This document shows, in pieces, positions 50,365 to 62,609 of a DNA stretch of 64,000 nt. The position numbers and the translations under genes were made by a program. The notes under the pieces are model-generated. The model had not been told where the DNA came from and ran no database searches. It saw only the letters and a list, made by a program, of their open reading frames with translations. The stretch covers positions 186,001-250,000 of the IMG/VR virus record IMGVR_UViG_3300027816_000052. One strand, 5' to 3'. Position 1 is the first letter of the stretch. Each line of letters starts with the position of its first letter.

Positions 50365-52338
50365 ATGAATAAAGTATTATTACCAAAAGAAGAAATTACA
50401 CAGAAGTTAGATAGAGATAAACTTACTTTATTGAACGCTTCTATCAAAGATTATGTGAACAACTTGTATGAAAATTCAAATGATGAATACATTATACAAG
50501 ATGGTGAACCATACGCCAATGGAGAATTACATTTGGGACATTTTTTAAACAAAACCTTGAAAGATTTTGTTGTAAAATATTACTTAACAAAAGGTAAGAA
50601 AGTTAGGGTTTCATTTGGTTGGGACTGTCATGGTTTACCCATTGAAAATAAAGCAAAAGAAATGAGTGGTGATTTAATTCAAAATGCTAAATTAGTCGCA
50701 ACCAAATATTGTGATATTCAAAATAAAACTCTTGAACTTTTCGGGATTTATCCAACTGAAGGTAGGTTTAAAACTATGGATATTGATTTTATAGAAAGAG
50801 AATTATATATATACCACCAACTACTAAATGCGGGTCTAATTCTTAAAAAGAATAAGCCTACTTGGTACTCACCAACATTAAAAACAGTATTGGCTAACTC
50901 AGAAATTGAATATAAAAAAATAGAAGATGAATCTTTGTATTTTCTATTCAACTCTGATAGTTTTAAATTACTTGTTTGGACAACAACAGAATGGACTGTA
51001 AACGGAAATCAGGCAGTATGTTTAAGTAATAATATAAAATATGTTAAAACTGTTGACAATATTATTTGTAGTGAAAGTTTTGCTATTGAAAATAATTTAG
51101 ATTATGATTTGTTTGATGTGAGTAATATTAAGTCATATCATAACCACAATGGAGATTTATGTCCAATTATTTATGATGACTACGTTTCAGATGATAAAAC
51201 AGGTATAGTACATCTTTGCGGTGGACACGGTGATGAAGATTATCGAATTTTAATGGATAATAACATAACCCCCAAAAATGTGTGCGATAAAATCGGCTTA
51301 TTAAAACACATAGAAGATTTTAAAATTGATGAAAAGTTTGTATATAAACGTGAAATTTACACACACGATTATCCAATTGATTGGCGTGAAGGGAATAAGG
51401 TGTATAAAGTATTAACGGAACAAACGTATCTTGATTTTGATTTAAACAAAATAAAGACTTGTTTAAAAGAAATAAAGTTATCATCAAAAGACAGAAATCG
51501 TTTATCAACGACAATATTTTCACGCAAAGATTGGTGTATTTCAAGACAAAGAAAATGGGGTGTTAAAATACCTAATAGTAATGATATATTGGATGTTTGG
51601 TTTGATAGTGGTTCTACATTTATGATGTATGATAAACCTGCCGATATATACATTGAAGGTTCAGACCAACACAGAGGGTGGTTTCAAAGTTCGATTATAT
51701 TAGCATCAATGATTGGTCGAGTACCAACAAAAAGAATAATAACACACGGATTTATTGTTGATAACACATTAGAAAAACTATCAAAATCAAAAGGTAATGG
51801 CGGAAGTTTGGAAAAGCTGTATGAAACATATAACCCTGATGTATTAAGACTATGGGTTTTACTGTCAGATTTTAAAAACGATATTGTCTTTTCGGAAGAT
51901 TCATTAAAAAACTCTGGTAAACAATATTTTAAAATAAGAAACTTTCTCCGTTATTTATTTAATAATCTATATATATATGATTATGATGAAACAAAAGTTG
52001 ATGAAAATATTTTTTTTAAAGTAAAAGAGTTGGAAAATAAATTTGATTTACTTGTCAATGAATTTGATTTGAATAAAGCAGTAAGGGGTTTTGTTGAATT
52101 TATAAACTATTATTCATCTTTGTTGACGGAGGATATTAAAAATGAATTTTATGAATCTGACACAAATTCCAATATGAGAATTAAATATGAAACAGAGTTT
52201 TACTATGTTTTAAAACACTTAAATAAACTACTTTTTTCGATTTTACCATTTCTTTCTATGGAAATAAAAAAAGCGTGGGAAGAAAAAAGAAAAGAAAAAG
52301 ATTTACATGTAGGGACTATATTTGGAAACGAGATGTAG
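50365..52338 (+). CDS. ileS: Minimal isoleucyl-tRNA synthetase (cassette 1)
   Basis: DGEPYANGELHLGH, GWDCHGLPIE, WTTTEWT, DWCISRQR, DVWFDSG, EGSDQHRGWFQS and KLSKS. Likely start at 50365 (657 aa). Confidence 0.9.
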   Translation: MNKVLLPKEEITQKLDRDKLTLLNASIKDYVNNLYENSNDEYIIQDGEPYANGELHLGHFLNKTLKDFVVKYYLTKGKKVRVSFGWDCHGLPIENKAKEMSGDLIQNAKLVATKYCDIQNKTLELFGIYPTEGRFKTMDIDFIERELYIYHQLLNAGLILKKNKPTWYSPTLKTVLANSEIEYKKIEDESLYFLFNSDSFKLLVWTTTEWTVNGNQAVCLSNNIKYVKTVDNIICSESFAIENNLDYDLFDVSNIKSYHNHNGDLCPIIYDDYVSDDKTGIVHLCGGHGDEDYRILMDNNITPKNVCDKIGLLKHIEDFKIDEKFVYKREIYTHDYPIDWREGNKVYKVLTEQTYLDFDLNKIKTCLKEIKLSSKDRNRLSTTIFSRKDWCISRQRKWGVKIPNSNDILDVWFDSGSTFMMYDKPADIYIEGSDQHRGWFQSSIILASMIGRVPTKRIITHGFIVDNTLEKLSKSKGNGGSLEKLYETYNPDVLRLWVLLSDFKNDIVFSEDSLKNSGKQYFKIRNFLRYLFNNLYIYDYDETKVDENIFFKVKELENKFDLLVNEFDLNKAVRGFVEFINYYSSLLTEDIKNEFYESDTNSNMRIKYETEFYYVLKHLNKLLFSILPFLSMEIKKAWEEKRKEKDLHVGTIFGNEM

Positions 52339-52345
52339 CACTTGC

Positions 52346-52465
52346 TTATAACGGTTGCAAATATAAAACGTTTTAAACTAAACTTAAATTGAAAAACAGT
52401 ATATAAATATAAACCAACAATAAATTTGGAACGCTGAAATAAATGTTTTATATTTGTTGTTATAA
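52346..52465 (+). repeat. attC-like hairpin (120 bp)
   Basis: TTATAAC-GGTTG-CAAATATAAAAC...GTTTTATATTTG-TT-GTTATAA. Confidence 0.85.
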
Positions 52466-52485
52466 ACACGTTAAATTATTTTATT

Positions 52486-52764
52486 ATGAAAACATATAAT
52501 GTAAAGTATGATGTTGGACAAGAAGTATATATACTTTTATCCAAAAAAATATTTAAAAGTAAAATTGAAAAGATTAGAATTGTTCATGGGGTACCTTATA
52601 TCAAAGGCGAAACAATGGAACAAATGGATGGAATTGAAATTGATTACTTGGTTGTAGTTAATGAACAATTCTATCCTTCAGGTGGACATTTATCTAGTTA
52701 TGATTGGTATAAACAGGATGATATTTTTTTGGATAAAGATGAACTGTTGCGGAAAATAATTTAA
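52486..52764 (+). CDS. Cassette 2 hypothetical protein
   Basis: ORF between the 52459 GTT and the 52775 AAC. Confidence 0.7.
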   Translation: MKTYNVKYDVGQEVYILLSKKIFKSKIEKIRIVHGVPYIKGETMEQMDGIEIDYLVVVNEQFYPSGGHLSSYDWYKQDDIFLDKDELLRKII

Positions 52765-52768
52765 TTGT

Positions 52769-52822
52769 TTATAACGTCTGATGATAAACAATCGTTTTAA
52801 TGTGTTTTATTTGCTGTTATAA
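52769..52822 (+). repeat. attC-like hairpin (54 bp)
   Basis: TTATAAC-GTCTGATGATAAACAATCG...GTTATAA; near-copy of 57404-57457. Confidence 0.8.
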
Positions 52823-52846
52823 GTATGTAATTTACAATTTATACCT

Positions 52847-53092
52847 ATGAAAAAAACGAAAAGAAAAATACATATTGGAAATGACCTATGGTTTTATTGG
52901 GTTGGTTCTGGTAGATGGGGTGAGGTAACTCATGTAACGATATGTTCACCAGATGAACAATATTATAAAATAGATGCAAGTGATGTTGCAAGTAGTGAAA
53001 TGTATGTTGGTGCGGAAGGGTCATTTCCAACACAAATATTACCGTCAAAAGTTAAAGAATATATTGAAAATAAAATAATAAATAAATTTTAA
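52847..53092 (+). CDS. Cassette 3 hypothetical protein
   Basis: ORF between hairpins. Confidence 0.7.
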   Translation: MKKTKRKIHIGNDLWFYWVGSGRWGEVTHVTICSPDEQYYKIDASDVASSEMYVGAEGSFPTQILPSKVKEYIENKIINKF

Positions 53093-53100
53093 ATTATTAC

Positions 53101-53195
53101 TTATAACGGTTGGGTGTATGAGAAGGTTTGCTTAGATGAACTTTCAAATTAACCACTGAACTTTATAGCAAACTTTCTTATACACCTTGTTATGT
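53101..53195 (+). repeat. attC-like hairpin (95 bp)
   Basis: GGTGTATGAGAAGGTTTGCT / AGCAAACTTTCTTATACACC stem. Confidence 0.88.
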
Positions 53196-53263
53196 GTAGG
53201 TGTGGTTAATTAAGGTAGAATGTTAAATAGTAGAAATGAACAAAAATTTTAAAAGAAAAATAT

Positions 53264-53674
53264 ATGAATTATAAACAAAAAATTACAACTATCAATTATT
53301 TTGAAAAGGTGGTTAAAATTTCTCTAACAAGAGAAGAGTGGAATTCATCTGGAACTTGGGTAGAGTCAATGATGAAAAAAGGTTGTGAAAGACTGAGTAA
53401 GGATTGGTTTGAAGATTTACATCACTTAGTTATGCGACCAATAAGTGACGAAATAAACTTTTCTGGTAAAAACTATACTTATGATGTGGATATAACATTT
53501 GATATACCAAGAGAATTACTGAGAATGTTTGTATATTCAATCGGTCAAATTGCTTATGATTTTGATGTTAAAGGTATAACTTCGGTTACTGCTCAAAATA
53601 TAGTGGGAAAAATAAACAAACAATTAAAAGAACAACTACCAAATGATGATAAATGGTTTCATTATGGATTTTGA
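53264..53674 (+). CDS. Cassette 4 hypothetical protein
   Basis: ORF between hairpins. Confidence 0.7.
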   Translation: MNYKQKITTINYFEKVVKISLTREEWNSSGTWVESMMKKGCERLSKDWFEDLHHLVMRPISDEINFSGKNYTYDVDITFDIPRELLRMFVYSIGQIAYDFDVKGITSVTAQNIVGKINKQLKEQLPNDDKWFHYGF

Positions 53675-53732
53675 TTTTTCTTTTAAAATTTTCAACCGAA
53701 ATGTTGATTAGAACGATGAACGGAACGCTTAC

Positions 53733-54208
53733 ACATAACGTATATCGGCTAAACGCAGTATTTAAAAACTTTTGCGAGGGAAATAATTAATCAATTAAAT
53801 AATAATAATTAAAAACAAAAAGTAAAATGGAAATCAAAACAAAATTTGACGTAAACAATTTGGTGAAAAGAAAATTCGACACCAATTCAAAGAACCAGAT
53901 GAGTGCTTTGGAAGTAATGGAAGTGATTGCACAAACTTGCTATGCAGGAACGCAGGTATTTTATTTGTGCAAACATGTAATTGCTCAAAAGGAATTTGTA
54001 GAAAAGTATTCTGAAAAAGGAGAATTTACTTGGGTGATTGCTCACAGTATTTCACAAGAAGAAAATCAGGCAGGATGGAGAAAATACCGTGAAGATGAAT
54101 TGATAGAAGCACCAAAAGAAGTGATTGACATTATACTTGGTAATTCTTAATTGTTCAATTGTGCGGTGGGAAAGTTTTTAAATATTGTCGTTTTAGCCGT
54201 TGTTATGC
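53733..54208 (+). repeat. attC-like hairpin with a gene in its loop (476 bp)
   Basis: CGGCTAAACGCAGTATTTAAAAACTTT pairs with AAAGTTTTTAAATATTGTCGTTTTAGCCG. Confidence 0.8.
53827..54150 (+). CDS. Hypothetical protein inside the attC-like loop
   Basis: 107-aa ORF with an A-rich leader. Confidence 0.7.
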   Translation: MEIKTKFDVNNLVKRKFDTNSKNQMSALEVMEVIAQTCYAGTQVFYLCKHVIAQKEFVEKYSEKGEFTWVIAHSISQEENQAGWRKYREDELIEAPKEVIDIILGNS

Positions 54209-54273
54209 GAAGGTGTGGCAACTCCAAAATTTCAAATTATAGACAAAACTTTCTTGCCACACTTTTGCATAAC
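54202..54273 (+). mobile_element. Empty cassette body (cassette 5, 72 bp)
   Basis: GTTATGCGAAGGTGTGGCAA...TTGCCACACTTTTGCATAAC with no ORF between. Confidence 0.8.
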
Positions 54274-54351
54274 GGTTGTAAATATGAGAAGTAAATTTTA
54301 CCTATAAAAATTAGATAAATCAAAATTTATTTCTTATATTTGTTGTTATAA
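54267..54351 (+). repeat. attC-like hairpin (85 bp)
   Basis: AAATATGAGAAGTAAATTTT / AAAATTTATTTCTTATATTT stem. Confidence 0.85.
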
Positions 54352-54382
54352 GTATGTAAAACAAACTAAATAATAATTAAAT

Positions 54383-54613
54383 ATGAAAATTGAAGGTCAA
54401 ATTACGCTAGATGGTATATTATATACACTGTTTATTTTATTCTGTTTATTTTTAACAATAGGTAGTTCTATTAGTGGGTGGTGGTATTTATCACACTTTG
54501 GATTCAGTGTAAAACAATTTTTGGTAAATATTTTAGTTTCGTCTTCAACTTTATTTATGATCTGGATGATTTTCACTAAAATATTTATTATAAAAATAAA
54601 CAGAATAAAGTAG
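54383..54613 (+). CDS. Cassette 6 small membrane protein (2 TM)
   Basis: Two hydrophobic helices. Confidence 0.7.
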   Translation: MKIEGQITLDGILYTLFILFCLFLTIGSSISGWWYLSHFGFSVKQFLVNILVSSSTLFMIWMIFTKIFIIKINRIK

Positions 54614-54626
54614 TTTGTTTTATTAC

Positions 54627-54757
54627 TTATAACGGTTGAGTATAACCGAAGGTGGGGATTAGAAGTGCCGAACCCTGACTTACCTACAAAAGTAAATTAG
54701 AAGCACAATATCTGAATGTTGGAACTACACCCCACTTTTGGTTATACTTTGTTAGGT
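54627..54757 (+). repeat. attC-like hairpin (131 bp)
   Basis: AGTATAACCGAAGGTGGGG / CCCCACTTTTGGTTATACT stem. Confidence 0.88.
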
Positions 54758-54777
54758 GTATGTAAATTTTACGGATT

Positions 54778-54966
54778 ATGAAAGATATACAACTGTTAAT
54801 TGATATGAAAGTTTCTTTAGGTAGGGAAACATTATTATTTCAGATACTTGGTAAGTATGGTGATAAAATACCAATGGAACTTCAAGAAGAACTACGAAAA
54901 TTGGCAGAAGAAGAAAGAAACTTTGGTGAAATGAAGAAACGAACTTTGAAGGGTGTGTTGGAGTAA
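54778..54966 (+). CDS. Cassette 7 hypothetical protein
   Basis: 62-aa ORF between hairpins. Confidence 0.65.
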   Translation: MKDIQLLIDMKVSLGRETLLFQILGKYGDKIPMELQEELRKLAEEERNFGEMKKRTLKGVLE

Positions 54967-54976
54967 AATTTATTAC

Positions 54977-55069
54977 ACCTAACGGTTGGGTGTATGAAAC
55001 GTAGCCACGCACAATACTTAATATAAACCACAGACCTTAATTGGCTATGTTTTATACACGATGTTAGCA
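54977..55069 (+). repeat. attC-like hairpin (93 bp)
   Basis: GTGTATGAAACGTAGCCA / TGGCTATGTTTTATACAC stem. Confidence 0.88.
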
Positions 55070-55175
55070 GTAGTACGGATTTAAACTACAAATGCTCATT
55101 CGGAGAACTGAACCTTTTTCTTTTCTTTTTTGTGGGTTGGACAAAATAAATTTGAAAAATTTAAAAATAAATAAT

Positions 55176-55409
55176 ATGAAATTAGAAACAATTGTAAAAG
55201 TTACACCAGATGGTGGAGTTGAAATTCCTTCTGATATGAAAGTTGGAACTGGATTGATGAATATGGTAAAAGAATTACGTGATAATGAATGGAGAACATT
55301 TGAACATCACGATAATTGGATTAAAAACGAACATTATCCAAATCCAACATTTGAACAACAATTTGATACAGGTAATGCTTATAAAGAAATGTTAAAAACT
55401 AAAATTTAA
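55176..55409 (+). CDS. Cassette 8 ORF a
   Basis: Likely start at 55176; the track's start at 55092 lies in the cassette flank. Confidence 0.6.
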   Translation: MKLETIVKVTPDGGVEIPSDMKVGTGLMNMVKELRDNEWRTFEHHDNWIKNEHYPNPTFEQQFDTGNAYKEMLKTKI

Positions 55410-55413
55410 AACT

Positions 55414-56013
55414 ATGATGAAAATTGAAGCAAAAAAAGACGGTAAAGGAAACATTGTAATATCGGAAGATTCCTTTGAAATGATACTGGCTTGTTTAGAT
55501 AATCAAAAATTTGTTGGTGAACAGCCACAAAATGGTGATTCGCTTTCGGTAGGCGAAGACAACTATTGGAAAGGACAAGAAGATATTCAAAACACTATTG
55601 ACCATTATAATAGAGAATGTAGAAAAATATTACATCAAAAATATGTTTTAAGAACAGAATCTGATGGTTATTTTCTTGCTAAAAAATATGAACATCAAAC
55701 AGAAGATACTGAATGGACTGGTGAAGATGTTGGATTAGTGTATGAACTATTCAAAGATACAAGAATAATTTATAATGAAACAAGAGATTTATTACCATTA
55801 GATGGTAGTGAAGAAATTAAGGAAGGAAGTACTCCAATTGGTAAAACAAAAGATGGGTGGATTGCAGTTGAACAAGAATCAAGACCTTGGTTAATTGAAA
55901 GAGCATTGGGATATGATGGTGATTATTTAACAATTTCTGAAGATGGCAGTAAGAATAGACCTTGGAAACAAGATGAAATTCGAAAAATTATAAACATATT
56001 TAATAATAAATAA
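55414..56013 (+). CDS. Cassette 8 ORF b
   Basis: 199-aa ORF. Confidence 0.7.
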   Translation: MMKIEAKKDGKGNIVISEDSFEMILACLDNQKFVGEQPQNGDSLSVGEDNYWKGQEDIQNTIDHYNRECRKILHQKYVLRTESDGYFLAKKYEHQTEDTEWTGEDVGLVYELFKDTRIIYNETRDLLPLDGSEEIKEGSTPIGKTKDGWIAVEQESRPWLIERALGYDGDYLTISEDGSKNRPWKQDEIRKIINIFNNK

Positions 56014-56014
56014 A

Positions 56015-56422
56015 ATGGGAATATTTGATTGTTTAATAGATAAAGACAATGGAAAACCAAAATCTGATATGGAATATATTTACAGATTAGATATGGTTTG
56101 GATACCTAACAAACTTGAAAGTAAACCAATTAAAATTGGAACGATAATGAATAATGTTATTCAACGAGATAATGGCAGTTATGAATTTACTTGTAAAGAA
56201 ACTGGTGAAAGATTACAAGCAACTTATTCTTGGGCTTTGGCTGAAAACACACCAGAAAATGTTGAAAGAATAAAAATATATGATGATGAATATTTAAAAT
56301 TCAAAGAATACGAAAGAAAAATAAATTCTTTGAGAAATAATATTATTACTCTTAAAGAGCGTGGAGAAAAAAGAAAAGAAAAAGATATTGCAGATGAAAC
56401 TCAAATCGGAGAACAAATGTAG
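56015..56422 (+). CDS. Cassette 8 ORF c
   Basis: 135 aa; the C-terminus reads through the cassette 3' flank. Confidence 0.7.
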   Translation: MGIFDCLIDKDNGKPKSDMEYIYRLDMVWIPNKLESKPIKIGTIMNNVIQRDNGSYEFTCKETGERLQATYSWALAENTPENVERIKIYDDEYLKFKEYERKINSLRNNIITLKERGEKRKEKDIADETQIGEQM

Positions 56423-56428
56423 TATTAC

Positions 56429-56487
56429 ACATAACGGTTCGGCGGGTTGCCGTTGTGCATTCAATAACGGCAACCCGACTGTTATGC
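56429..56487 (+). repeat. attC-like hairpin (59 bp)
   Basis: CGGGTTGCCGTT / AACGGCAACCCG perfect stem. Confidence 0.88.
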
Positions 56488-56527
56488 GGGGTCATTCTTT
56501 TTCACTCGGTAAAAAGCAAAAGGTACA

Positions 56528-56830
56528 ATGGCAAAAAGGAAGTTAGGCCCATCGAGCGGCAAGTGCTCCAAGTGCGGAGGTCACATCAGCATCAATCCAC
56601 CAAGACCGTGCCGCCGCTGCTCAGGCGAAAAGCCTCAGGCGAGCTCGGAAAAGAAAGAGCGCGTGTTCACCGAGAGCGAGGTGAAGGCGATGGTGCGAGA
56701 GATTCTCGCAGAACAGGAACGACTGCATATAAGCGATGGATCCGGAGGACACGATATTGTGTGGGCGGTCGGGATCGGAGAGGTCGAGGCGGTGTTTAAA
56801 GCGCACGGCATTGTTCTCGATCCCGCATAA
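56528..56830 (+). CDS. Cassette 9 GC-rich zinc-ribbon protein
   Basis: CSKC...CRRC; the stop codon TAA lies inside the GCATAAC core. Confidence 0.7.
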   Translation: MAKRKLGPSSGKCSKCGGHISINPPRPCRRCSGEKPQASSEKKERVFTESEVKAMVREILAEQERLHISDGSGGHDIVWAVGIGEVEAVFKAHGIVLDPA

Positions 56831-56954
56831 CGGTTGACGGTATGAAAAGTTGGGGATTAAAAGATATAAACTTTCGCACCGATACAATGATAATTAATAG
56901 TACAAACCTTCGGGAACGCACACACGCCCCAATTTTTTATACCGTGTGTTATGC
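56825..56954 (+). repeat. attC-like hairpin (130 bp)
   Basis: ACGGTATGAAAAGTTGGGG / CCCCAATTTTTTATACCGT stem. Confidence 0.88.
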
Positions 56955-56975
56955 CCCGTTTTTATCCAATTTTTT

Positions 56976-57398
56976 ATGTTACAAGACGAATTAGCATTAC
57001 AATATAAATACAAAAAACTTCCATCAGAATTATCTGACAAGGTAAGAAACCAATATTTGTCTGAAATACCAAAATGTTTGAATATCAATGGTGATTCTGA
57101 ATTTGAGTTAAAAACAGCAAACGGTACAATAATTTCAAAAGGATATGAAAGAATTGTAATTGGAGATTATGGAGCGTTTATTGAATTTAACAGAAATCAA
57201 GTTATTGACGAAAATATTTGTATTCAAAAGGGGCAAGAATATAGAATTAACGATGAAAAATATAGTAAGAATGTGAAATATTTTTGGTTGACTGCAAAAG
57301 ATTCATCGTGTATAAAGATATATTTACAACAGAAAACGGTATCATACGCAGATTATAAACCAAATATGTATTACGTGTCTCCATTTGAGGTTTTTTAA
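56976..57398 (+). CDS. Cassette 10 hypothetical protein
   Basis: GYERIVIGDYGAFIEF; likely start at 56976. Confidence 0.7.
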   Translation: MLQDELALQYKYKKLPSELSDKVRNQYLSEIPKCLNINGDSEFELKTANGTIISKGYERIVIGDYGAFIEFNRNQVIDENICIQKGQEYRINDEKYSKNVKYFWLTAKDSSCIKIYLQQKTVSYADYKPNMYYVSPFEVF

Positions 57399-57403
57399 AT
57401 GGG

Positions 57404-57457
57404 GAATAACGTCCGATGATAAACAATCGTTTTAATGTTGTTTATCATTTGTTATGT
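57404..57457 (+). repeat. attC-like hairpin (54 bp)
   Basis: ATGATAAACA / TGTTTATCAT stem. Confidence 0.85.
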
Positions 57458-57536
57458 GTAGGTGTGGATTATTAAGGTGGAATGTTTAATCGGAGAACTG
57501 AACAAAAATTTTAAAAGAAAAATTAATATATAGATT

Positions 57537-57761
57537 ATGGGAAACATAGTTAAAAAATTTGAAAACTTTAAAGATGGGTTATACGTCACATGTAAAAACG
57601 CACCAGAAGATAATTACCAACTTCATAATAAAAAGGATTATTTGGTTATTAAATATGATAACCAACCGTATGGTGTTGGACGAGTAACTATATTTAACCC
57701 TTCAAGTAGAAAGGAAGAAACATATCCTAAAACTATGTTTAGTGAACCATTTAACAAATAA
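57537..57761 (+). CDS. Cassette 11 hypothetical protein
   Basis: 74-aa ORF. Confidence 0.65.
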   Translation: MGNIVKKFENFKDGLYVTCKNAPEDNYQLHNKKDYLVIKYDNQPYGVGRVTIFNPSSRKEETYPKTMFSEPFNK

Positions 57762-57819
57762 TTTTTCTTTTAAAATTTTAAACATAGATGTTGATTAGAA
57801 CGATGGGTGGAACACTTAC

Positions 57820-57952
57820 ACATAACGTTTCGCAGCTTGGCGAGGTGCGGGATTTACAGCACTAAAGACGATTAGAATTACAAATTTTTAAATAAAAAAC
57901 AATATGTCAAACGAAGTACAAAACCCCGCATCTTGCCAAACTGCTGTTATAT
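57820..57952 (+). repeat. attC-like hairpin (133 bp) containing the start codon of the next gene
   Basis: GCAGCTTGGCGAGGTGCGGG / CCCGCATCTTGCCAAACTGC stem; ATG at 57904. Confidence 0.88.
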
Positions 57953-58185
57953 GCCGCCTTTTTGATTTGGGAAGGAAAGGGTTAACATGGGATTGGTCAA
58001 AATTGGAACTGAAAAAACAATACTTTATCAGTCGTGAAGATGTTTTGAATATGAATATGCTTTGGCAACTTGCACAAGGTGGTATAACTGAACAAGCACA
58101 ATCTTTGAATGCAGAAGTATTGATTTGGGAAGATGTCATAAAAAACGGATGGTACTTGTTGCTGAGACCGCAAGGTGGCATATAA
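57904..58185 (+). CDS. Cassette 12 protein starting within the upstream hairpin
   Basis: The first ~15 codons (MSNEVQNPASCQTAV) are hairpin sequence. Confidence 0.65.
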   Translation: MSNEVQNPASCQTAVICRLFDLGRKGLTWDWSKLELKKQYFISREDVLNMNMLWQLAQGGITEQAQSLNAEVLIWEDVIKNGWYLLLRPQGGI

Positions 58186-58313
58186 CGGTTTGCGTATTGC
58201 TGACGTTGCCAATTTGAAACACAAATGTTGAATTAAAAACAAAAAAATAAATATGAAAATCAGAGTTGAAGTTAAAGACGAAGCTGGCAATGTTCAGCAA
58301 TACGTTGTTAGGC
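58180..58313 (+). repeat. attC-like hairpin (134 bp) containing the start codon of the next gene
   Basis: CGTATTGCTGACGTTGCCA / TGGCAATGTTCAGCAATACG stem; ATG at 58253. Confidence 0.88.
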
Positions 58314-58471
58314 GCAGTTACTTGGTCAAATTTGTTGACCCGAAGAAAGAGTATCCTGTTACCTACACAATTAAACACGATGGCACAAGAGTAAATGAAC
58401 CTGCAATGCTCAAAGGCGAAGATTTAACCGAAAATCAAATTGCACAACTTTTCTCGAAGGGTTTGTTGTAA
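58253..58471 (+). CDS. Cassette 13 protein starting within the upstream hairpin
   Basis: The first ~19 codons (MKIRVEVKDEAGNVQQYVV) are hairpin sequence. Confidence 0.65.
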   Translation: MKIRVEVKDEAGNVQQYVVRRSYLVKFVDPKKEYPVTYTIKHDGTRVNEPAMLKGEDLTENQIAQLFSKGLL

Positions 58472-58475
58472 TTGC

Positions 58476-58570
58476 GCCTAACGATTGGGTGTATATGTAG
58501 TTTTTTATTTGGAAATGTCAAAACTTATTCGTACCTTTGTAAAAAAAATTACATATACACCTTGTTATGT
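58476..58570 (+). repeat. attC-like hairpin (95 bp) with a promoter in its loop
   Basis: GGTGTATATGTAGTTTTTT / AAAAAATTACATATACACC stem. Confidence 0.88.
58508..58539 (+). promoter_or_regulatory. Bacteroidota housekeeping-type promoter inside the attC-like loop
   Basis: TTTG-N20-TACCTTTG. Confidence 0.75.
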
Positions 58571-58601
58571 ATAGTTTATTCACAAATTAAAATAAAAGTT
58601 T

Positions 58602-58808
58602 ATGAAACAACCAAAAATTAAAATAACCGACATTCACGGTAAAGACTGGGGTATTAAAAAAGTAAAAACACTTCATTGGAATTTGGACGGAAAATTAAAC
58701 ACAATTCAAGTTGATTTTTCTGGAACTATGGATATGTATGATTTAGATGATGAAGGCGTTTTTACTAATCCACATGGTAATATGAAAGGCGTTATCATTT
58801 GGGAATAA
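58602..58808 (+). CDS. Cassette 14 hypothetical protein
   Basis: 68-aa ORF. Confidence 0.65.
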   Translation: MKQPKIKITDIHGKDWGIKKVKTLHWNLDGKLNTIQVDFSGTMDMYDLDDEGVFTNPHGNMKGVIIWE

Positions 58809-58813
58809 ATTAT

Positions 58814-58866
58814 ACATAACTAGTATATATAAGTAAGTATAATCTAACCACTTAAAAATAAAGGAC
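58814..58866 (+). other. Candidate attI-like half-site between the last cassette and the recombinase
   Basis: ACATAAC is followed by TAGTATATATAAGTAAG rather than by a hairpin; no partner GTT arm. Confidence 0.5.
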
Positions 58867-59667
58867 TTGAATAATAAAATTATTAAGATTTGTGAAGAAA
58901 AGTTTATATATTTAAACTATTCACCAAGAACAAAAGATAATTATCTTTCACATATAAAAAATTTCTTAAATCACATTGGTAGTAAACAAGTAATACATTG
59001 TAATGCTCAAGATTTTCAATCCTATTTAGATAATTATAAATTCACTTCAACAGCACAACAAAACCAAATCATTAACGCAATAAGATTTCTCTACAAATTT
59101 GGTCTTAATAAAAAATATGATAAAATATCGTTTAAAAGACCTAAATCTGAGAAGAAACTACCAAAAGTAATTGATTCAAATTCAATCATTGATAAATTAA
59201 ATAAGATTGATAATCTCAAACACAAAGCAATTCTCACCTTAACTTTTTCAGTTGGTCTACGAGTCTCAGAAATAATTAATCTTAAAATAGAGGATATTGA
59301 TTCCAAGCGAATGTTAATCCACATTAAGAACGCAAAAGGAAGAAAAGATAGAGTTGTTCCATTATCTCAAAATGTATTAAGACTATTAAGAACTTATTAT
59401 AAAAATTATATCCCAAAGGAATATCTCTTCAATGGACAAAACAGTACTAAATATTCAATAGGTAGTTGTCAGAAAATATACAAAAAATATATTGAATCTG
59501 ATGGACATATACACACACTTAGACACAGTTTTGCAACATCCTTATTAGAAAATGGAACAGATTTAAGAATTATTCAAAAAATTCTTGGTCATTCAAATGT
59601 TAAAACCACAGAAATATACACACACGTTTCAAATCAAATTTTGAACAAAATTAATTTGCCAGTTTGA
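58867..59667 (+). CDS. Compact tyrosine recombinase (integron-integrase-like, lacking the IntI insertion)
   Basis: SAM-like N-terminus YSPRTKDNY, GLRVSE (R), AKGRKDR (K), HTLRHSFAT (HxxR), LGH and TEIYTH (Y). TTG start. Confidence 0.92.
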   Translation: MNNKIIKICEEKFIYLNYSPRTKDNYLSHIKNFLNHIGSKQVIHCNAQDFQSYLDNYKFTSTAQQNQIINAIRFLYKFGLNKKYDKISFKRPKSEKKLPKVIDSNSIIDKLNKIDNLKHKAILTLTFSVGLRVSEIINLKIEDIDSKRMLIHIKNAKGRKDRVVPLSQNVLRLLRTYYKNYIPKEYLFNGQNSTKYSIGSCQKIYKKYIESDGHIHTLRHSFATSLLENGTDLRIIQKILGHSNVKTTEIYTHVSNQILNKINLPV

Positions 59668-59686
59668 AAAGTTTTAGTTATCTTTG
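59655..59686 (+). promoter_or_regulatory. Bacteroidota-type promoter
   Basis: TTTG-N20-TATCTTTG upstream of 59702. Confidence 0.8.
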
Positions 59687-59701
59687 TCAAAAATAACAAA
59701 A

Positions 59702-59983
59702 ATGAAAAAAGAAGTTTTTGAAATTATCATCTGGAATGATACATTTGGAAAAGTGGTTGATGAAAGATTTGTTGATGAAACACAATTTTCGATTTTTTTG
59801 AAAGCGATTAAGGGTTGCTTGGATACAACACAAGATTTTAGTTATTTTAATGGAAAAAACTTTTTAATCCACATTCCTTTTGCAGTTTTGAAAAATAGCG
59901 TTATCTTTACCAAAGAAAATGAAATTGGTGTAAGTGAAATCATTAAATCAAAAGCTGAAGCTCTAACAACTAAAACAAAATAA
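59702..59983 (+). CDS. Hypothetical protein
   Basis: ATG at 59702, downstream of a promoter. Confidence 0.65.
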   Translation: MKKEVFEIIIWNDTFGKVVDERFVDETQFSIFLKAIKGCLDTTQDFSYFNGKNFLIHIPFAVLKNSVIFTKENEIGVSEIIKSKAEALTTKTK

Positions 59984-59987
59984 TAAA

Positions 59988-60137
59988 ATGGGAAAACTTT
60001 TCAAAATCATTCTTGGTGTTATTTTGGTATACATTGGCGGAAAAATGGTTTACAACAATGTAAAAGGTAAAAAAGATGAAGAATTTAATTTTAATGATTT
60101 TAAAGACTTGAAAGCAATTAAAGATATTGAATTTTAA
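59988..60137 (+). CDS. Small single-TM protein (49 aa, not in the track)
   Basis: MGKLFKIILGVILVYIGGKMV... Confidence 0.55.
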   Translation: MGKLFKIILGVILVYIGGKMVYNNVKGKKDEEFNFNDFKDLKAIKDIEF

Positions 60138-60141
60138 AAAA

Positions 60142-60384
60142 ATGATAGAAAAAATTTTAGAGATATATGATGATGCTAGCTTTATGAAAGCTGACGGATT
60201 TGATAATGCAATAATCGGTATTGATGAGGTTGATATGCGATTAATATATTCGGTATCAAAATGTATTGACATTCTGAAAAAAGATGGTATGAATTATGAA
60301 GAAGCAAGAGAGTTTTTTGATTTTAATGTGAGCGGTTCTTATGTTGGTGAAAAAACACCAATATGGTGTTATGATGATTTTTAA
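60142..60384 (+). CDS. Conserved phage hypothetical protein (ADGFDxAIIG family)
   Basis: MKADGFDNAIIG...EEAREFFDFNV.GSYVGEKTP. Confidence 0.7.
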   Translation: MIEKILEIYDDASFMKADGFDNAIIGIDEVDMRLIYSVSKCIDILKKDGMNYEEAREFFDFNVSGSYVGEKTPIWCYDDF

Positions 60385-60442
60385 TTTCTTGGTTTTTTAA
60401 ACCAAGTGGTGGAGCGACCTGCAAGCGTTTGGTCCCAAATAT

Positions 60443-60478
60443 AAATGGTGATAGAAATATCACCATTTTATTTTTTTG
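60443..60478 (+). terminator. Intrinsic terminator
   Basis: AAATGGTGATA-GAAA-TATCACCATTT followed by a T run. Confidence 0.8.
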
Positions 60479-60507
60479 TTATATTTATATATAAAACACT
60501 TCAAAAA

Positions 60508-60825
60508 ATGGCAAAATTCATTCTTACCGAAAAACAAATGGCGGAAGTTCTTCAGCATATTGAGAAAACAAAAAAACAAGTTAATGAAGATAAGGACGGT
60601 TCTTATATGGCAAAACAACAATTATTTACAATTGCAACATTAGCATATAAAATGTGGGAGCAATTGGGTGATGATGAACAACTTGATGATTGGATGGAAT
60701 CAAAGATAGCACAAGCTGAACAATCCGTTGTTGCTGTTGTTAAAGCATATATGTATGATGAGGTTGAAGATAAAATGAAGGGAATGGATAAGTTGGACCA
60801 TAATGATTTAATTATTGGGAATTGA
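60508..60825 (+). CDS. Late protein with an N-terminal ILTEKQM motif
   Basis: ATG at 60508; ATATTTAT upstream; C-terminal QLDDWMESKIAQA. Confidence 0.7.
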   Translation: MAKFILTEKQMAEVLQHIEKTKKQVNEDKDGSYMAKQQLFTIATLAYKMWEQLGDDEQLDDWMESKIAQAEQSVVAVVKAYMYDEVEDKMKGMDKLDHNDLIIGN

Positions 60826-60852
60826 CCTTTTGACTTTTTCTTTTTATCTTTA
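60822..60852 (+). promoter_or_regulatory. Bacteroidota-type promoter (variant -7 box)
   Basis: TTG-N20-TATCTTTA upstream of 60866. Confidence 0.6.
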
Positions 60853-60865
60853 TGGTGTTAAACCA

Positions 60866-61081
60866 ATGGAAAAAAGAAAACTAAAAATAGAATTAAACGA
60901 ATATTGTTATAATTGCGCTGATGGCTGTTGTACTCATTATGGTACAATAACCAAAGTTAATGGTCAAGAATTGGAATTGCATAATGATGATACAGCAACA
61001 ATACTTAAACAAGTATTGAAACATTTGGGTTATGAAGTCGAAATAACAACTAATGTAGCAGATGATTATGGGAATGTTTGA
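60866..61081 (+). CDS. Small Cys-containing hypothetical protein
   Basis: YCYNCADGCC; promoter upstream. Confidence 0.6.
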   Translation: MEKRKLKIELNEYCYNCADGCCTHYGTITKVNGQELELHNDDTATILKQVLKHLGYEVEITTNVADDYGNV

Positions 61082-61576: not shown

Positions 61577-61608
61577 TTTGGAATTTGAAATTTTTTTTCT
61601 TAGATTTG
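61577..61608 (+). promoter_or_regulatory. Bacteroidota-type promoter
   Basis: TTTG-N20-TAGATTTG upstream of 61629. Confidence 0.8.
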
Positions 61609-61628: not shown

Positions 61629-62609
61629 ATGAAAGACGCAACGATTGAAATTATTTCTGAAGTCAAAGCTCATCCTGATGCAGATAGACTTGATCTTGTT
61701 AAGATTCTTGGGTTTCAATGCGTTACACAAAAAGGACTTTATAAGGGTGGTGAGAAAATTGTTTATATTCGACCTGATGCGGTTCTTCCTATTGAACCTT
61801 GGACTGAAGAGTATCGAAAATATTCACCAAAACGAATCAAAGCTGTAAAACTTCGTGGCGAATTTAGTGAAGGTATTATTGTTAGGTTTGAACAACTTCC
61901 AGTTGATTTATCAAATCTTCAAGTTGGCTCTGATGTGAGTGAACAAATTGGTGTTGTTCATTATGAAGCACCACAACCACAAGATCTTCAAGCAAAAGGT
62001 TATCTTCCGGTTGGAATTGGTCCCACTGATGAAATTCGATTTGAGAATATCATTGATGAACTTCCATTCGGTTCAATTGTTGATGTTACATCTAAAGTTG
62101 ATGGACAAAGTTGTAGTTTCTATTATAACATTGAAACTGATGAATTTGGTGTTCTTGGAAGAAACTTGGAAATGAAGTTGGATGCGGTAAATAACTATAC
62201 CGCACATGTTGCTCGTTACAACATTAAAAATAAGCTTATTGACTATTGCAAAAAACATAATGTTTCTTTGTGCATTCGTGGTGAGTCGTTTGGTCAAGGG
62301 ATTCAAAGTTCTGGAAACAATCCACATTCTCAAAAACCAAAAGGGTGGGTAATGTTTTCTGTATATAACATTAAAGAACGTAAATATCATAGAAAGAACG
62401 ATAGATTCTATTTTAGAAATGTTGCGCAAGAATTGGAATTACCATTCGTTGATATCATTGAATTGGATGTCGAATTAACTAATGAGTTGATTCAAAAATA
62501 TTCGGTTGGTATTGATAAAATTGAAGGTAAACCTTTTGAGGGTGTTGTAATTAATCATGAAAATGGTTCTTTTAAAGTTATTAACAAATCTTATGATTCT
62601 AAAAAATGA
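61629..62609 (+). CDS. RNA ligase, DRB0094/Rnl5-like family
   Basis: N-terminal HPDADRL...RIKAVKLRGEFSEG module, SKVDGQS (KxDG), RGE, EGVV and SFKVIN. Confidence 0.85.
   Translation: MKDATIEIISEVKAHPDADRLDLVKILGFQCVTQKGLYKGGEKIVYIRPDAVLPIEPWTEEYRKYSPKRIKAVKLRGEFSEGIIVRFEQLPVDLSNLQVGSDVSEQIGVVHYEAPQPQDLQAKGYLPVGIGPTDEIRFENIIDELPFGSIVDVTSKVDGQSCSFYYNIETDEFGVLGRNLEMKLDAVNNYTAHVARYNIKNKLIDYCKKHNVSLCIRGESFGQGIQSSGNNPHSQKPKGWVMFSVYNIKERKYHRKNDRFYFRNVAQELELPFVDIIELDVELTNELIQKYSVGIDKIEGKPFEGVVINHENGSFKVINKSYDSKK

Follow-up and report, generated by a model that had tools for sequence, protein, structure and literature searches.

A predicted host-type promoter inside the hairpin of a phage gene cassette

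The locus described here raises the question of whether one short element can supply both the mobility and the expression of a gene cassette. We analyzed a 64,000-nt stretch of DNA (hereafter, the window), bases 186001–250000 of a 256,029-bp linear IMG/VR virus record (IMGVR_UViG_3300027816_000052) with about 29% G+C. The phage appears to be a jumbo phage of a Bacteroidota host, although the host is inferred rather than known. An earlier note proposed that an attC-like site at 58476–58570 contains a complete host-type promoter in its loop, and that this hairpin drives its own cassette and possibly the neighboring integrase. No close DNA relative was found in the phage collection searched.

The loop motif and its statistics

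The sequence reads exactly as the earlier note described. The element begins shortly after the stop codon (58469–58471) of a 72-aa ORF and consists of GCCTAAC, the 5-nt sequence GATTG, a stem, a loop, the complementary stem, TT and GTTATGT. The features are as follows.

58476–58570 (+): whole hairpin recombination site (type A, 89 nt from TAAC to GTTA), bounded by GCCTAAC (58476–58482) and GTTATGT (58564–58570)
58479–58482 (+): 5′ core TAAC, left boundary of the cassette and inferred crossover core
58488–58506 (+): 5′ arm of the stem, 19 nt
58507–58542 (+): 36-nt loop, of the form A-TTTG-GAAAT...-TACCTTTG-TAA
58507–58516 (+): extended –33 element ATTTGGAAAT, with the core TTTG at 58508–58511
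58532–58539 (+): –7 element TACCTTTG, 20 nt after the TTTG core
58543–58561 (+): 3′ arm of the stem, 19 nt
58544 (+): predicted transcription start (within about 2 nt), the second base of the 3′ arm; inferred, not observed

The two boxes and their spacer fill 32 of the 36 loop bases. The arms are 95% complementary, and the single-stranded DNA is predicted to fold at –14.1 kcal/mol (z = –3.0). An ORF listed at 58472–58621 (49 aa, TTG start), which spans the hairpin, was dismissed as an artefact of ORF listing.

To assess whether the motif could arise by chance, we counted matches to TTTG and TAnnTTTG at various spacings. With a loose gap of 17–23 nt, the motif is not significant (12 found versus 8.6 expected). 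With the gap fixed at 20 nt, however, it occurs 8 times in the window, all on the + strand, against 1.28 expected, and 0 of 100 shuffled sequences reached 8. Across the 256-kb genome, the spacing profile peaks at 20 nt (13 on the + strand, 4 on the –) and 19 nt (8 and 4), compared to 0–6 per strand, mostly 0–2, at the other spacings tried. The –7 box by itself is uninformative in this AT-rich genome. There are 432 copies, 372 of them in coding DNA, and these show no upstream signal when taken together. When only the 60 copies in non-coding DNA are considered, a T-T-G-(G) signal emerges de novo at –23 to –20, the position expected for a 20-nt gap. The hits share an extended form, TTTGGAA.TTTGAAA...TAtCTTTG, and most lie 9–30 nt before an ATG. 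A weight matrix built without the loop site gave it 11.2 bits at the positions not fixed by the pattern, against a null of –15 ± 7.9; 1.5e-4 of random positions reach this score, and the site ranks tenth genome-wide. Sigma-70-type promoters, by contrast, are not enriched between 52 and 62 kb (65 found versus 57.6 expected).

The motif matches the published consensus for the primary sigma factor of Bacteroidota, TTTG near –33 and TAnnTTTG near –7 (PMC7366714, PMC2483708, PMC9723704). In Flavobacterium psychrophilum, the –7 box occupies –12 to –5 (PMC9723704), which places the predicted start at about 58544, one base from the 58545 given in the earlier note. The phage class differs from the consensus in having an extended –33, (A)TTTGGAA, a preferred –7 box TAyCTTTGT, and a fixed 19–20 nt gap.

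An array of hairpin-led cassettes beside a recombinase gene

To learn what the hairpin is, we scanned the whole genome for TAAC, 3–7 nt, a stem, a loop, the complementary stem, 0–4 nt and GTTA. Strong matches occur only at 52349–58567. There are eleven, all on the + strand, mostly with 5 nt after TAAC and 1–3 nt (most often 2) before GTTA, and one or two degenerate copies are visible by eye. The next gene encodes a tyrosine recombinase. The surrounding features are as follows.

52349–58567 (+): array of about 12 sites, at 52349–52462, about 52772–52826 (degenerate), 53104–53192, 54270–54348, 54630–54754, 54980–55066, 56432–56484, 56828–56951, 57407–57454, 57823–57949, 58183–58310 and 58479–58567
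52425–52456 (+): second predicted promoter inside a site, TTTGGAAC...TATATTTG, in the first site of the array, with its –7 box overlapping the 3′ arm (rank 4 genome-wide by weight matrix)
58602–58808 (+): 68-aa ORF of the cassette, function unknown, with TAAAA 4 nt before the ATG
58816–58833 (+): attI-like site, ATAAC-TAGTATATATAAG, 34 nt before the recombinase start
58817–58820 (+): TAAC at the right boundary of the cassette, shared with the attI-like site
58867–59667 (+): XerA-like tyrosine recombinase, 266 aa, TTG start
59655–59686 (+): next predicted promoter of the same class, overlapping the end of the recombinase gene (rank 3)
60443–60478 (+): first clear intrinsic-terminator-like hairpin plus T run downstream of the loop promoter

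Related recombinases (55–100% identity) were found in 80 IMG/VR contigs of up to 362 kb, and the same scan of these loci yielded 319 sites. Practically all lie on the recombinase strand and upstream of the gene, with almost none downstream or on the other strand. An element yATAAC-TAT(T/C)ATATATA is conserved 45–60 nt before the recombinase start in nearly every locus; in the window the distance is 34 nt, and AACTAnTATATA occurs once in the 256-kb genome. The context thus resembles an integron platform, with a recombinase, an attI-like site and an array of highly variable cassette content. When 11 cassette ORFs of the window were compared by tblastn with the 80 related loci, only the two identical contigs were found. 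No Pfam or PHROG family was found for any cassette ORF tested, and no Rfam family was found in 52000–61000. Bacterial relatives of the recombinase are Bacteroidota proteins of 40–50% identity, nearly all without such arrays. This result supports a Bacteroidota host but does not support an origin from a chromosomal integron.

In integrons, the attC site follows its ORF. Here, the arrangement is reversed. Isolated blocks shared by two loci in different surroundings (8 examples; loci are designated L plus a number) begin at xTAAC(G) of a site and end at the next TAAC, and one of these blocks abuts a further hairpin in L005 but the attI-like element in L053. Over all informative breakpoints, 16 of 35 left ends and 8 of 25 right ends coincide with TAAC, compared to 3 and 1 near GTTA. 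The only G+C-rich cassette (56432–56831, 55% versus about 28%) includes the G+C-rich hairpin at its 5′ end. Most directly, the 68-aa ORF has homologues of 82–99% identity in metagenomes, and in L206, L211 and L212 the homologue is preceded by the same hairpin with the same promoter motif. Homology with L206 and L211 begins exactly at the 5′ TAAC and ends at the TAAC of CATAAC, while the flanks on both sides differ. A more distant homologue (L214) sits in an ordinary operon without any hairpin. The unit 58479–58820 is thus a discrete mobile cassette, comprising the hairpin, the predicted promoter and the ORF. Excision at TAAC would join the cassette end, ...CATAAC, to GATTGGGTG..., and would leave the upstream TAAC joined to TAGTATATA....

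We next asked whether the loop promoter is under selection. Among the 255 distinct sites, loops fall into families on similar stems. Five sites (in the window, L042, L050, L051 and L052, with recombinases 68–70% identical to that of the window), found without regard to promoter content, have the promoter loop. All five have intact boxes, even when the search allows two and three substitutions; only the first base of the extended –33 element varies (G in L052), and the TTTG core is invariant. Across the four sites with the 20-nt gap, 2 of 18 box columns vary, against 12 of 15 spacer columns (Fisher p = 9e-5). The stems of the type A sites covary, with 8 pairs showing compensatory changes. The site type with a promoter at the start of the array recurs in L041. 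An exact scan of IMG/VR for ATTTGGAAAT-N14/15-TAYCTTTGTAAAA found 36 distinct contexts. About a dozen are inside TAAC...GTTA hairpins, and about twenty are free-standing, typically just after a terminator-like hairpin with a T run and shortly before an ATG. One decayed site (L083) retains the promoter of the window letter for letter but has lost the 3′ arm, and in another (L091) a terminator-like hairpin replaces the 5′ arm. The ORFs behind type A sites are all different, 56–230 aa (all but one 56–110), and start 34–143 nt (all but one 34–73) after the –7 box. This is the behavior of a portable promoter rather than of a recombination-specific loop.

In the stems of the 255 sites, non-Watson–Crick positions on the + strand are G.T or T.G 355 times and A.C or C.A 37 times (p about 1e-66, although the sites are related and this overstates their independence). 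The sense strand is therefore the one selected to fold, whether as DNA, as RNA or both.

Expression of the cassette and of the recombinase

Taken together, the observations favor, with fair confidence, the view that 58476–58570 is the recombination hairpin at the 5′ end of a small mobile cassette, the last member of an integron-like array, and that its loop is a promoter for the host primary sigma factor. Promoter activity, the start site and catalysis by the neighboring recombinase remain inferences from sequence. In double-stranded DNA, transcription should start at about 58544, and the transcript, weakly structured (–10.2 kcal/mol, z = –1.5), would carry only half of the hairpin, with an open, A-rich 58-nt leader, and would express the 68-aa ORF. 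The ATG lies 62 nt after the –7 box, and the TAAAA before it matches the flavobacterial ribosome-site motif (PMC2483708). When the + strand is single-stranded, the same sequence folds into the hairpin that the XerA-like recombinase is inferred to recombine at the 5′ TAAC core, such that the promoter moves with its ORF as one unit. Read-through RNA from upstream would contain the full hairpin, a strong structure of –29.8 kcal/mol, and hence the hairpins could also act at the RNA level. The site may stop or process upstream transcripts and restart transcription, although this too is inference.

The proposed link to the integrase is plausible only. Between 58200 and 59700, the only + strand –7 boxes are at 58532, in the loop, and at 59679, in the next promoter, and no terminator-like site lies before 60443. 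Read-through from 58544 across the attI-like site into the recombinase gene, with its weak TTG start, is thus the simplest expectation, but it is unproven in the absence of RNA data. Because cassettes appear to enter next to the attI-like site, the newest cassette would set the transcriptional input to the recombinase. A caveat is that most related arrays have no strict promoter in the last cassette or within 8 kb upstream of the recombinase, and hence recombinase expression cannot depend in general on a type A cassette. Type A cassettes lie 281–3374 nt from the gene in the first set of loci examined and 1349 nt away in L085.

It remains possible, if less favored, that the promoter serves only the 68-aa ORF and that the recombinase is controlled separately, for example from the conserved AT-rich attI-like region by a phage-specific polymerase or factor, or only by long read-through from the start of the array. 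Array order would then have no effect on recombinase level. That most relatives keep the recombinase and the attI-like element without a strict sigma-A promoter is in line with this view, and the TTG start suggests low, tightly set expression. On the other hand, neither a –7 box nor a terminator lies between 58544 and 58867, and the attI-like motif, being unique in the genome, is not a recurring promoter type.

Two further possibilities appear less likely. The hairpins could be composite terminator and promoter modules like the PeSLs (promoter-early stem-loops) of T4-type phages, which would insulate ORFan genes and shuffle them by general homologous recombination, with the recombinase playing no part. 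Both systems flank small ORFan genes in a variable region of a large phage and combine a stem-loop with a host-type promoter (PMC2839356, PMC4122927), the folded strand is the sense strand, and a 47–70 nt leader after GTTA is shared among several type A sites. But breakpoints fall at a 4-nt core rather than within stretches of homology, a cassette joins a hairpin-less attI-like site at that same core, sites are confined to one strand and one side of a conserved recombinase gene in about 80 contigs, and only 10 of 319 sites (8 non-redundant) carry a strict promoter. We consider it very unlikely that the loop match is not a working promoter and that the conserved bases instead serve recombination or another ligand, or are simply young. 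Sites with the same stem but a loop without a promoter do exist (L034 and L036), and other families have conserved loops lacking promoter boxes, such as the roughly 88-nt family with ...TTAGTAnAAAC... and the 48-nt family with CGTTTTAATG. However, the extended motif stands alone before genes in about 20 unrelated phage contexts and survives loss of the hairpin in L083, its boxes are fixed while the spacer diverges, and its spacing matches the promoter class of the genome.

Comparison with integrons and related systems

Like integron attC sites, the hairpins separate small, mostly ORFan cassettes and have complementary TAAC/GTTA cores, an asymmetric bulge (5 nt versus 2 nt between core and stem) and a variable terminal loop. 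They fit the structural description of attC, an imperfect hairpin of 57–141 bp with RYYYAAC and GTTRRRY cores, although R′ fits GTTRRRY only in part. The consensus is [A/C]TAACG ... TGTTA[T/G], and lengths fall in classes of about 48, 79, 88, 117 and 125 nt. In other respects the system departs from an integron. The recombinase (Pfam Phage_integrase, 1.9e-37) scores 195 bits on the NCBIfam XerA model (cut-off 220) and 161 bits, in two stretches, on the integron integrase model TIGR02249 (cut-off 265). It aligns in one piece with Pyrococcus abyssi XerA (PDB 4a8e, 3.9e-37) but in two pieces with VchIntIA (2a3v), where query residues 174–209 face IntI4 residues 177–260 and about 48 residues, the region of the IntI-specific insertion (I2 alpha-helix), are absent. 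That insertion is regarded as the innovation that allowed single-strand recombination (PMC7790495), and its absence counts against the recombination of hairpins by this enzyme. Breakpoints fall at the 5′ TAAC rather than at G|TT of the 3′ core. All cassette ORFs read towards the recombinase gene, and hence no platform promoter Pc can serve them. The folded strand is the coding strand, not the bottom strand. Finally, the carrier is a lytic-type jumbo phage.

Some integron cassettes bring their own promoter, including gene-less promoter cassettes of Vibrio superintegrons (PMC8876359, PMC11014356, PMC6557892), but in the papers read these promoters lie in the 5′UTR or body of a cassette, not in the loop of the recombination site. 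In group IIC-attC introns, a promoter lodged at an attC site can drive the next cassette (PMC3001079), but it belongs to the inserted intron. In PeSLs, the terminator stem-loop precedes the promoter, exchange is by homologous recombination at variable points, and no recombinase is known (PMC2839356, PMC4122927). Here, the promoter is inside the 36-nt loop, and a dedicated recombinase and an attI-like site are present. Literature searches for phage-borne integrons or attC-like arrays found nothing relevant in the library searched, which is not proof of novelty. The element resembles cassette-borne promoters, PeSL-like modules and attC hairpins and sits within what appears to be an undescribed phage-borne, mirror-image integron-like system.

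A more tentative idea is that jumbo phages of Bacteroidota carry a mirror-image integron in which a XerA-like recombinase without the IntI insertion shuffles hairpin-led cassettes at a TAAC core, with the variable loops used as regulatory payload. Capture of a promoter-bearing cassette at the attI-like site would then raise recombinase expression and hence the rate of shuffling, and array content would feed back on array dynamics.

In integrons, cassette expression is thought to depend on distance from one platform promoter, with exceptions traced to promoters in cassette bodies or inserted introns. Here, the recombination site itself carries the predicted promoter, so one 89-nt element probably provides both mobility and expression, and each such cassette would be an autonomous plug-in gene. 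The compact hairpin would also be a ready-made portable expression part for Flavobacteriia and Bacteroides, where standard promoters fail. Its position in a phage, in an array that reads towards the recombinase gene, gives a concrete model for how large phages acquire and immediately express accessory (possibly anti-defence) genes, for whether a Xer-like enzyme without the IntI insertion can recombine hairpins, and for whether array order tunes the recombinase.

Variation among loops and stems of the sites

Inspection of the sites in the window and in related loci revealed variation in what the loops carry. The relevant features of the window are:

57823-57949 and 58183-58310, two sites with loops of about 100 nt
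57407-57454 and about 52772-52826, mini-sites of a 48-nt class
54270-54348, a member of a highly conserved family of 78-80-nt sites

In the first two of these sites, the loop contains the A-rich leader and start codon of the next ORF (ATG at 57904 and 58253), and the 3' arm lies inside the coding sequence. Loops can therefore carry translation starts as well as promoters. The mini-sites, a class that includes 24 of 26 sites of 48-49 nt in related loci, have a conserved loop, CGTTTTAATG. The site at 54270-54348 and its 78-80-nt relatives in six loci (L006, L036, L042, L055, L058 and L069) carry TATATTTG as part of the 3' arm, directly before TTGTTA, and have a conserved loop ...TTAGAyAAA... where a -33 would lie. 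This family may represent a third promoter-bearing class with a non-canonical -33 (matrix rank 29).

A still larger loop may exist in two other loci. A block of 326 nt, shared by L032 (3307-3632) and L062 (6187-6512), starts at CATAACG, and its ends are mutually complementary (GCGGATATATGAA... and ...TTCATATATCCG, then TTGTTAT). This block may be a site with a loop of about 280 nt.

Among the 255 unique sites in loci L003-L082, the wobble pairs are themselves polarised, with G in the 5' arm and T in the 3' arm 318 times, compared to 37 times for the reverse. This asymmetry may be a structural mark for strand or orientation choice, or it may reflect a mutational bias.

Cassette composition, shared trailers and neighbouring genes

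Other features of the window concern the cassettes themselves and the genes that follow the recombinase:

56432-56831, a G+C-rich cassette, including its 5' hairpin
53676-53745 and 57762-57828, copies of a repeated segment of about 65 nt
59655-59686, a promoter overlapping the last codons of the recombinase gene
61577-61608, a promoter preceding the RNA ligase-domain gene
61629-62609, a gene for a 326-aa protein with an RNA ligase domain

The G+C content of the first of these is 55%, compared to about 28% for its neighbours, and this cassette looks like a recent capture from a G+C-rich source. The segment of about 65 nt (ttttcttttaaaatttt...gttgattagaacgatg...cttacacataacg) is repeated before two TAAC cores and is a shared cassette 3' trailer. 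Another trailer, ending ...CTCAAAACAAAAATAATATTACyTATAAC, gives several unrelated cassette ORFs the same C-terminus, SKQK (loci L052, L084, L086, L114, L118 and L119).

The promoter at 59655-59686 is a strong one of the same class (matrix rank 3), and it precedes the ORF starting at 59702. The recombinase therefore appears to close one transcription unit, and the next to begin inside its end. Further along, the 326-aa protein has an RNA ligase domain and a PHA02142-type OB fold (Pfam 1.2e-14 and 3.2e-12), and its gene lies behind its own promoter.

Possible relatives outside the phage arrays

Two bacterial loci, L148 (from a Bacteroidota MAG) and L166 (Aquimarina), encode a recombinase of 42-44% identity and have several TAAC...GTTA hairpins, which lie on the opposite strand, downstream of the gene. 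This geometry differs from that of the phage arrays, and it may represent a cellular relative of the system. A homologue of the 68-aa cassette ORF, 82% identical, is found in another locus (L214, 1493-1702), where it lies in a tightly packed operon without any hairpin. This operon could be the source context from which the cassette was formed, or the gene could be a fixed former cassette.
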